Of a DNA stretch of 64,000 nucleotides, positions 17,596 to 20,500 are shown piece after piece; the stretch's first letter is position 1; each line of letters starts with the position of its first letter. The translations under genes were made by a program, and so were the position numbers. Origin of the DNA: Octopus sinensis (Eukaryota); assembly GCF_006345805.1 (NCBI RefSeq), contig NC_043019.1:18289360-18353359 (forward strand). Direction: 5' to 3'. A model generated the notes under the pieces. That model worked only from the letters and a program-made list of their open reading frames with translations. It was not told the DNA's origin and did not search any database.

Positions 17596-20500
17596 GTTTG
17601 GTTTTAACTTTTTTAAAAAGGGAAAAAATTTTTGTACATTTTGGTTCCATCACCCCCATTAAAAAATTGCCATTAAAAAACTGGGTTACCTCCCCACTAA
17701 AAAATGTGGCAACAAGAGATTGGATTAAAAGAGTTAGATCGTTTTGATTCATTACTTCAACACATTGTGGATGTTTGGCCTCCTCAATAGGAATTATAGG
17801 ATTTCTTATAAAAATAATATCAGATTCAATGAGATATTTAATCTTTTCATTTTTCATGTTTATGAATTTTTTCATTTTTGTTTTTTTTTCTTTAGGGTTA
17901 AATAATTTTTTAATGGGGGTGAGATAACCAAAAATACTGATATTTCTCATAAAACGGTGGGGAGATAATCCAATTTTTTAATGGGGGTGAGATAACCAAA
18001 AAGTACCAAAATATTTTATGAAGAATCATTATCCATGCCTGCATTTAACCAAACATGGTACCAGCCTTACCATCATGGTATATATACACACACACACATA
18101 TAGTGGAAGCATATGACCTAGTGGTTAGAGCAGCGAACTCATGGTCGAGGGATTGTGGGTTCAAATCTCAGATTGGGCGATGTGTGTGTTTATGAGTGAA
18201 ACACCTAAAGTTTCATGCAGCTCCGGCAGAAGGTAATGGTAAACCTCGGCTGACTCTTTCGCCACAACTTTCGCTCTGTCCTCCTCCTGCATCTAGCAGT
18301 TCACCTACAACGGACCAGCATCCTGTCCAGGTGGGGAACCTATATGCCAATGAAACTGGGAAACCAGCCCTTATGAATCAGGCATGGCTCGAGAAGGAAC
18401 AAACAACATACATATATATATATATACAACAGGCTTCTTTCAGTTTCCATCTACAAATCTATTTACAAGACTTTGGTCAGCCCAAGGCTATAGTAGGAGA
18501 CACCTGCCCAAGGTGCCATGCAGTGGGACTGAACACGGAACCATGTGGTTGGGAAGCAAGCTTTTTACCAACACAGCCACAATTGAACATGAATAACGTT
18601 TATTTATAATTGTTATTGTTGTTGTTGTTATTTACTCACTATTATAGTGTCATGATAATCAACAGAATTTGGTACCAAACAGTTTCATACCAAATATGGA
18701 GAGACAAATGTAGTAATCACTGGAAATTGGCTGAGTGGAAAAGTATCCGATGATTGCTAAATTTGCTTCACTTCATTTCTTATAAATCAATTACTATATC
18801 CAGTTAATCCATTATTACTCCATATTAATTTGCTGTTAAACTTCTAATTAATCTAATTTAGATTCGTAATTAATCTGGATTTCTAGTTAAATTTCTAATC
18901 AAGCTATTGCTTTCCATTTTTGCTTAATTAAAAACTATCCAATGTTAATCAACTGTTTTCTGTTGCTAATCTATCCCAGGAAATCTCTGATGAACTGAAA
19001 GGTGAAGCCGGTTCCTTGTTAGTCTTGAAATGTGACCTCAACAATGAGTCTGATATCCTGTCTATGTTTGGGACCATCAAGTCCCATTATGGAGGAGTGG
19101 ATGTGTGCATCAACAATGCAGGACTGGCCCACGCTGAGCCACTGCTTACTGGGGACACTAACAAATGGCGGGAGATGTTCAATGTAAGTGGTTTCTCTGC
19201 TTCCTCCTCCTCCTCCCTCCCTCCCACATCCCTCTTTCCTTCATTCTTTCTCCTCAACTGTTTGTTTTGTACTTTCAAAGCTGAGTGGAATATGAGATCC
19301 CTTACTTGGAAAACAGATAAAGGGTCCAGCTGTAAAGCCATGCTTCAATAACATCTGTGTGACCCAGGCTTACATGGAAAATGAACAAAGGAGCATGTGT
19401 GTGCGTGTGTATCATCATGAACTTCATCATCATCATTTAACGCCCATGCTAGCATGAGTTGGATGGTTTGACAGGATCTGATGTGTTCAAAGACTGCTCC
19501 AACCTCCACTTGCTGCTTTGGCATGGTTTCTACAGCTTGGTGCCCTGGCTAACACCAACCACTTTACGCATTACTCTGTAAGGAGCACAAAGAACATTAT
19601 AGAAAAGAAGGTTTATTTTTATCTTCATAGCATTCTTTGATAAATAAAATTATTATCTGTTATTATATATCTGTCTTTTTATAAACATAAATCTCTCCTC
19701 AAATATCTTACGCACCCAGTATATATATATACAGGGTGCGTAAGATATTTGATATATATATATATATTTGTTATTAGCAAGGGAAGCATATTAGTTCAAA
19801 ATAGCAATTTGTATGTCATACTTAAAGCTAAATGTAGTCTTTGTCTCATGAAAGCATCTCTTATAAATGTATTGTATAAAAAAATTCAGATATATATTGG
19901 CAGCAGATGGCAACCATTGAAGAACTGCAGTAATGTTGCTAAAAATGTATTTCTGTTTCTTTGAGCTTTGTCAGTATTAAGTATCCACACCTTGCTAAGC
20001 AAGAATCAGCCACTACTGAAGTCACTGGTTTCGAAGGCAGAATGAAAATTCCTTGTTAGCAACAGAAGCAATATCAGTTCAAAATAGCAATGCTTGTATC
20101 ATAATTCAAGCAGAGAATTGTCTAAAATTTTGGTGCAAAGAGCACCATACGAGCATGATCATTGACAGAGTGGCTAACCGGTTTCCGTGCCAGTGGCACA
20201 TAAAAGGCACCATTCGAGTGTGATCGTTACCAGCATCACCTTACTGGCACCTGTGCCGGTGGCATGTGTAAAAAGATTCGAGCGAGGTCATTGCCAGTAC
20301 CGCCTGACTGGCTCCCGTGCCGGTGGCATGTAAAGAGCACCCACTATACTCTTGGAGTGGTTGGCATTAGGAAGGGCATCCAGCTGTAGAAACTCTGCCA
20401 GATCAAGATTGGAGCCTGGTGCAGCCACCTGGTTTGCCAGCCCTCAGTCAAAATCGTTCAACCCATGCTAGCATGGAAAGCGGACGTTAAACGATGATGA

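Follow-up and report, generated by a model that had tools for sequence, protein, structure and literature searches.

The 64,000 nt of DNA considered here (the window, which corresponds to about 18,289,360–18,353,359 of chromosome CM016881.1 in the Octopus sinensis assembly GCA_006345805.1) carries two tandem genes, termed A and B, for DHRS11-like members of the short-chain dehydrogenase/reductase (SDR) family. Whilst the two are otherwise strongly diverged, a 261 bp tract that contains exon 2 and the adjoining margins of its introns is almost entirely identical between them. From comparison of the sequences amongst octopods, this tract very probably represents a small island in which interlocus (non-allelic) gene conversion between the tandem genes has recurred.

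An exon-sized tract shared by two old paralogs

Copy A of the tract lies at 18936–19196 and copy B at 47912–48172, both on the + strand and 29 kb apart. Each is 261 bp in length and comprises 44 bp from the end of intron 1, the whole of exon 2 (204 bp; 18980–19183 in A and 47956–48159 in B) and 13 bp from the start of intron 2, an anatomy described in the initial annotation of this DNA and reproduced by the gene models. The copies match at 260 of 261 bases, with the sole mismatch, likewise reported there and borne out here, being a T at 19023 in A (GTC, Val58) for a C at 47999 in B (GCC, Ala58). The edges of the tract are abrupt, the first base outside being mismatched at either end, and a blastn comparison of the window against itself returns the pair at 99.6 % over exactly this span; the other collinear matches between A and B in that comparison are exon-sized and of 71–80 %, with the remainder being dispersed repeats. 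That the introns outside the tract do not align, as had been claimed, is apparent on both sides: downstream, alignment of the A and B flanks yields similarity not above that of shuffles, and upstream there is a weak, non-collinear similarity of AT-rich motifs and nothing more. Were exon 2 to diverge by 25 %, as exons 1, 3 and 4 do, the chance of finding one difference or fewer amongst its 204 sites would be minute (binomial p = 1e-24), and the longest identical run, at 168 sites, compares with a maximum of 75 amongst 20000 run-length permutations.

Exons other than the second differ between the O. sinensis genes by 21–32 %, with 28/132 differences in exon 1, 24/95 in exon 3, 38/130 in exon 4 and 21/66 in exon 6; the hand counts made previously for exons 1 and 4 were exact. 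Exons 5 (93 bp in A, 84 bp in B, a length difference also seen earlier) and 7 (66 and 42 bp, respectively) are of unequal size, and the introns are beyond alignment. Nei–Gojobori estimates of synonymous (dS) and non-synonymous (dN) divergence between A and B, taken over exons 1, 3 and 4 together, amount to dS = 1.29 and dN = 0.16 in O. sinensis, and to dS = 1.16 and dN = 0.15 in Octopus bimaculoides. For exon 2 the corresponding dS is 0 in O. sinensis (45.7 synonymous sites) and 0.094 in O. bimaculoides, and the intronic bases of the tract display 0/57 differences between the O. sinensis copies. Judged by a dS above 1, A and B are old paralogs that were duplicated long ago. A single gene copy, in a 29 kb locus, is present in Argonauta hians; the duplication may be slightly older or slightly younger than the Octopus–Argonauta split, as quartets with four outgroups favour (A,B) in about 40–77 % and (B,Argonauta) in 23–59 %. 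Protein distance to Argonauta is 0.33 for exon 2, and for the rest of the protein it is 0.28 in B and 0.50 in A; the exon 2 value falls between the two and points to neither copy as the donor.

The 57 intronic bases within the tract bear on how it was copied. Because they are included, the template must have been DNA and not complementary DNA (cDNA), and cDNA-mediated conversion, a candidate mechanism, is ruled out. For the same reason protein-level selection is insufficient to account for the tract; this had been argued initially from sharp edges that take in intronic sequence, and the argument holds, given that mismatches begin directly outside.

Both genes are composed of seven coding exons on the + strand. 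Gene A (17464–29009; exons 17464–17595, 18980–19183, 22002–22096, 22913–23042, 24303–24395, 28688–28753 and 28944–29009) encodes a protein of 261 aa that is exactly XP_029650093.1, and gene B (44703–63940; exons 44703–44834, 47956–48159, 49176–49270, 50169–50298, 61068–61151, 62733–62798 and 63899–63940) encodes one of 250 aa that is exactly XP_029650032.1 / XP_036368477.1. Exon 2, at 204 bp, is the longest, and the remaining exons range from 42 to 132 bp. Both proteins are labelled 'dehydrogenase/reductase SDR family member 11-like' by NCBI, both exceed the Pfam adh_short cut-off of 26.6 bits (154.5 bits for A and 160.9 bits for B), and the closest solved structure for each is that of human DHRS11 (PDB 1XG5; E = 2e-89 for A). 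With the human protein (SDR24C1) they share length class, the TGxxxGxG and NNAG motifs and the S…YxxxK region. The first of these motifs occurs as TGAS(T/C)GIG at residues 12–19, within exon 1, and NNAG at residues 89–92, within exon 2, of both copies, and the Ser…YxxxK region is encoded by exon 4. Thus, exon 2 specifies conserved strands of the Rossmann core together with NNAG, and exons 3–6 the active-site and substrate regions. The end of the octopus exon 2 (…MFNV) matches that of exon-2-like open reading frames (ORFs) from other animals.

Two discrepancies were observed in existing annotations of these genes. In O. bimaculoides, XP_014769982.2 merges A and B into a read-through protein of 557 aa, and in Octopus vulgaris, CAI9739799.1 (A) is without the last 27 residues of exon 2 (CINNAG…MFN), the genomic exon being intact.

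Grouping of exons amongst Octopus species

Both A and B were at hand from three Octopus species, namely O. sinensis, O. vulgaris (assembly GCA_951406725.2; A in locus L003 and B in L002) and O. bimaculoides (GCA_001194135.2; both genes in L001), and were compared alongside the Argonauta gene (L004). Searches with the exon 2 protein identified one additional octopod, termed X, with a B-type copy only; the other matches were exon-2-like ORFs of unrelated animals. X is represented by Logan contigs of raw reads (L008 and L009; runs SRR11869381/0) that contain a B-type exon 2 and introns, and lies outside the three Octopus species as an outgroup, with an intron 2 divergence of 0.19 that exceeds the 0.081 between O. 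sinensis and O. bimaculoides and the 0.006 between O. sinensis and O. vulgaris. The T at 19023 that separates the two tracts of the window is private to O. sinensis A, with C found in all other Octopus copies, Argonauta and X.

The limits of the tract in O. vulgaris are identical to those in O. sinensis (44 + 204 + 13 bp), and its A and B copies likewise differ once, at exon 2 site 46. In O. bimaculoides the 3′ end falls at the same place and the 5′ end about 10 bp further out; within this island A and B differ at 6/204 exon sites and by four intronic mismatches and two small indels. The surrounding sequence is of two distinct types. The A-type 5′ flank (…ttgctttccatttttgcttaattaaaaac; 18880–18935, + strand) is orthologous in A of O. 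vulgaris and O. bimaculoides, and the A-type 3′ flank (ctgcttcctcc…; 19197–19250, + strand) is similarly kept amongst A orthologues, both being unlike the B-type flanks, whilst the B-type 3′ flank (tgtccttgattgctaatgg…; 48173–48230) is kept in B orthologues and in X. Shared island edges set within orthologous flanks therefore indicate that the island predates the split of O. bimaculoides from O. sinensis/O. vulgaris. The same flanks bear on the possibility of an assembly or polishing artefact, in which O. sinensis reads from one paralog would have replaced the sequence of the other. Local assembly problems are conceivable there, as the assembly contains a suspiciously near-identical further copy, B2 (described below); however, O. 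vulgaris and O. bimaculoides, each assembled independently, have the same tract with unique A- and B-type flanks, the B-type arrangement is present in the raw-read contigs of X, and reads from 20–30 % diverged, unalignable sequence would not mis-map. Mis-polishing or collapse, the error foreseen in the initial annotation, is excluded by these three assemblies and the Logan contigs, and the probability left to such an artefact is negligible.

As had been proposed, the copies of exon 2 from the three species cluster according to species, whereas those of exons 1, 3 and 4 cluster according to paralog. Six sites of exon 2 (30, 42, 45, 75, 156 and 163), all of them synonymous, separate the two O. 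bimaculoides copies from the four of O. sinensis and O. vulgaris, and no site groups the copies by paralog. For exons 1, 3 and 4 the count is 70 paralog-grouping sites to a single species-grouping one, a distribution that departs sharply from the 0:6 of exon 2 (Fisher's exact p = 3e-8). Neighbour-joining bootstraps behave accordingly, with exon 2 giving 99.4 % to a clade of the four O. sinensis/O. vulgaris copies, 0.2 % to an A clade and 0 % to a B clade, and exons 1, 3 and 4 together giving 100 % to each of the A and B clades. Independent parallel change at six sites is not a credible source of this pattern.

Nor is exon 2 slow to change at silent positions. Between O. sinensis and O. bimaculoides the orthologous dS is 0.20 for exon 2, in A and B alike, compared with 0.12–0.13 for other exons, whilst the protein it encodes is well conserved (dN 0.013–0.019). 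As its synonymous rate between species is normal, purifying selection cannot explain the identity of the paralogs. The initial annotation had held that an exon 2 equally conserved between the paralogs of distant species would count against conversion, and the O. bimaculoides paralogs are indeed 97 % identical in this exon; conversion is nevertheless not refuted, since the synonymous states that the paralogs share are particular to the species, and the synonymous rate of the exon is normal. The freedom of synonymous sites to vary between species also opposes constraint at the nucleotide level without any conversion, be it from an embedded RNA, a duplex for RNA editing or splicing enhancers. Coleoid transcripts are heavily edited from adenosine to inosine, and sequence near editing sites is constrained, which lends this idea some substance; however, a scan of 18500–19600 matched no Rfam family, folding of the tract was no better than that of shuffles (z = −0.09), and it appears extremely unlikely.

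A single ancient conversion before the Octopus split, followed by slow evolution or purifying selection, would account for boundaries common to three species and for the conserved exon 2 protein. It is contradicted by an interspecies exon 2 dS of 0.20 alongside A–B values of 0 and 0.094 in O. sinensis and O. bimaculoides, and by six species-specific synonymous states that occur in both paralogs. Moreover, amongst approximately 103 neutral sites in O. sinensis (57 intronic and 46 synonymous) there are 0 differences between A and B, where at least 8 would be expected from the 8 % intron divergence between species. This alternative is consequently regarded as very unlikely.

Argonauta and X agree in marking site 42 as derived in the two O. 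bimaculoides copies and site 45 as derived in all O. sinensis/O. vulgaris copies, and each lineage has therefore undergone at least one conversion after the split. Thus, of the recent conversion event put forward in the initial annotation, the conversion stands, with exon 2 grouping by species, and the single recent event does not, as the process has recurred since before O. bimaculoides and O. sinensis separated. In O. sinensis and in O. vulgaris the one A–B difference per 261 bp is similar to the 0.6 % divergence between these species themselves. The A–B dS of 0.094 in O. bimaculoides, about half of the interspecies value, suggests that the last full homogenisation there took place roughly midway since the split. 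At site 46, O. vulgaris A and both O. bimaculoides copies have a G, as do X and Argonauta, and O. sinensis A and both B copies have a T; this hints that B may have been copied into A in O. sinensis once it had separated from O. vulgaris, although a single site is no proof.

The introns around the island vary widely in length. In O. bimaculoides, intron 1 is 155 bp long in A and 350 bp in B; in O. sinensis and O. vulgaris it reaches 1384 and 2434 bp, respectively, in A, and about 3120 bp in B of either species. Amongst the dispersed repeats within intron 1 of O. sinensis A is that at 18399–18580, which has at least 4 more copies in the window. TTAATC motifs are crowded at the end of intron 1 of B (7 in 300 bp, at 47651–48000, against a background of 0.5 per kb in the window), the cluster spanning roughly the last 250 bp of the intron. 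By eye they are also repeated in O. bimaculoides B (L001, ~11800–12046) and in X (L008, ~700–930), and the intronic part of the conversion tract holds gttaatc and gctaatc. Intron 2 of O. vulgaris A harbours a 62 bp copy of the start of exon 3 (L003, 7484–7545), 100 % identical to O. sinensis exon 3, and no such copy is present in the window.

A cluster of differences is also found in exon 4 of B, where 8 positions in a 64 bp stretch distinguish O. sinensis (50203–50266) from O. vulgaris (L002 8721–8784), giving DLHFY…SLARG in the former and DAHFY…SLITG in the latter. Beyond this cluster their B coding sequences differ by 1 base, in exon 1, and the nearby introns by <1 %. Some of the states in the cluster are A-like and some are as in O. 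bimaculoides B; the cluster does not form a clean patch of A-to-B conversion.

Putative mechanism, selection and the missing tyrosine of copy A

The comparison shows a two-sided transfer between the paralogs, templated by DNA and recurrent in time, which amounts to non-crossover interlocus gene conversion. The probable course of events is as follows. After a long-ago duplication, the introns diverged past alignment, and exon 2 with its splice-site margins was copied again and again between the paralogs through DNA-templated, non-crossover repair, such that within each species the synonymous and intronic sites of the tract evolve in concert. The ancestor shared by O. bimaculoides and O. sinensis/O. 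vulgaris already had the island with its boundaries, and at least one later conversion took place in each lineage, the latest in O. sinensis/O. vulgaris falling around or after their very recent split. Persistence would presumably require near-identity over about 200 bp or longer, a length that exon 2 alone amongst the exons attains; once the introns had diverged, exon 2 may thus have been the only part still able to template repair, with each event renewing the identity needed for the next.

Exon-limited conversion has classical examples in the human red/green opsin genes, RHD/RHCE and the globin genes. As in other cases of interlocus conversion and concerted evolution (PMC3924818), the octopus locus presents a near-identical patch, silent and intronic sites included, within diverged paralogs, the patch grouping by species and its flanks by paralog. 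The review by Mansai, Kado & Innan (2011, PMC3924818) puts the minimal efficient processing segment at about 200 bp, with rates much higher above 250 bp of identity, and gives mean conversion tracts of 200–300 bp for yeast and rodents; the 261 bp island falls within this tract range and near that minimum. Unlike most textbook cases, the background here is far older, with a dS above 1 and unalignable introns, and in place of a gradient of identity there is one exon-sized patch with base-sharp edges kept across at least one speciation. Concerted evolution of tandem duplicates that is confined to an exon is in itself a well-known process, and the octopus locus is a further example that reveals no new kind of mechanism; the locus stands out by the age of its background, its sharp, species-conserved edges and an island size near minimal homology, and by nothing else. 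No paper was found on gene conversion in these octopus genes.

Several points weigh against recurrent conversion as set out above. Neither conversion events nor shared polymorphism were directly observed, and the comparison spans three Octopus species. The exon 2 clade of O. bimaculoides A and B has a bootstrap support of 78 %, and the polarisation of changes depends on one concordant site per lineage, with two more sites splitting the outgroups. There is no signature of GC-biased conversion in exon 2: the GC content at its third codon positions, 0.54–0.57, is the highest amongst the exons and is equally high (0.56) in the single-copy Argonauta gene. Conversion may also have stopped in O. bimaculoides, where the copies already differ at 6/204 exon sites, and the placing of the island in the longest exon by a need for minimal homology is inferred from one locus.

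Copy A carries Phe159 (HFFSATK; TTT at 22956–22958, + strand) where SDRs have their catalytic Tyr, which B retains as Tyr159 (HFYSATK; TAC at 50212–50214, + strand), as in human DHRS11. The YxxxK feature is thus found in B (YSATK) and is lacking in A, where TGxxxGxG, NNAG, the Ser and the Lys are all retained. Loss of this Tyr normally abolishes SDR catalysis. Phe159 (FSATK) occurs in A of all three species (3/3), and between O. sinensis and O. bimaculoides the dN/dS of A is 0.10, indicative of strong purifying selection; for these reasons A is a functional gene and not a decaying one. By sequence it is best described as a homologue with an SDR fold, and activity as a classical SDR is not claimed for it. 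The combination of a Tyr-to-Phe change, kept cofactor motifs and purifying selection resembles that of other Tyr-lacking SDRs, considered pseudoenzymes, and of FabG Y151F (PMC7973133). This variant of the Escherichia coli FabG stays active, so that an SDR with Tyr replaced by Phe can retain activity (PMC7973133), and the 'dead' enzyme proposed in the initial annotation is hypothetical.

These features of A raise the question of selection on the island. Conversion might merely supply variants, with identity kept by selection, either because the Tyr-less A needs a cofactor-binding half the same as that of B, for instance to serve as its partner in a hetero-oligomer or as a sensor of NADP(H), or because conversion elsewhere in the gene is purged, since it would wipe out the diverged active-site exons of A. 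In its favour are the strong constraint on A with its cofactor motifs intact, and a converted exon that encodes the Rossmann core and NNAG when the diverged exons 3–6 encode active-site and substrate regions. Against this, all six homogenised substitutions are synonymous, as fits neutral concerted evolution, the location of the island can be explained by exon length alone, and the usual dimer-interface helices of SDRs are not encoded by exon 2; overall, we consider such a role for selection unlikely. A more specific version, in which A would act with B as a regulatory or hetero-oligomer partner or as a cofactor sensor that needs an identical NADP(H)-binding module, is, on present sequence comparisons, somewhat less likely again; if true, gene conversion would be the mechanism that keeps a pseudoenzyme and an enzyme co-adapted. 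Selection may add to conversion, whether against the conversion of diverged active-site exons or for a common cofactor module, yet it is not required, since every homogenised change is synonymous.

Under recurrent conversion, the locus offers a clean natural case in which conversion and divergence partition one duplicated gene, with one exon-sized block evolving in concert across speciation whilst the active-site exons diverge and one copy loses its catalytic tyrosine. It provides a testable case both for exon length setting which parts of old paralogs escape conversion, and for mosaic evolution in a pair formed by an enzyme and a possible pseudoenzyme. For annotators and phylogeneticists it also carries a warning, as whole-gene trees or dS values of cephalopod DHRS11-like genes are distorted by exon 2.

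A third copy and retroelements around the genes

A third O. sinensis copy, B2 (XP_029650003.1), is located about 25 kb past the end of the window, at 18,378,307–18,408,201 of CM016881.1 (positions 10001–39895 of the fetched locus L005, which covers 18,368,307–18,418,201). It is 98.7 % identical to B across the introns, 2 bases of exon 1 distinguish its coding sequence from that of B, and the two share an identical exon 2 tract. Intron sizes vary between the two, with intron 1 being 23 kb in B2 and 3.1 kb in B, and intron 4 being 1.65 kb and 10.7 kb, respectively. No counterpart of B2 is present in O. vulgaris or O. bimaculoides, where a gene on the minus strand follows A and B within 2–3 kb. 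Either very recent duplication or the retention of a haplotig accounts for B2.

Intron 4 of B, which is 10.7 kb in O. sinensis and 5.1 kb in O. vulgaris, harbours in the former a retroelement resembling a long interspersed nuclear element (55276–59742, + strand), with ORFs matching RVT_1 at 57531–58316 and 58307–58843; its upstream ORFs have no Pfam match. Long inverted repeats bracket this element, pairing 51262–51897 with 59961–60596 (96.7 %) and 51881–52779 with 53465–54439. Further retroelement fragments lie between A and B, comprising an RVT_1 match at 33145–34017 (+ strand) and RVT_1 together with a PHD finger at 38109–39443 (− strand). The same intergenic region contains a 493 aa ORF without a Pfam match (35555–37036, + strand) and a tandem array at 37331–38061, in which the offsets are about 61 and 122 bp.

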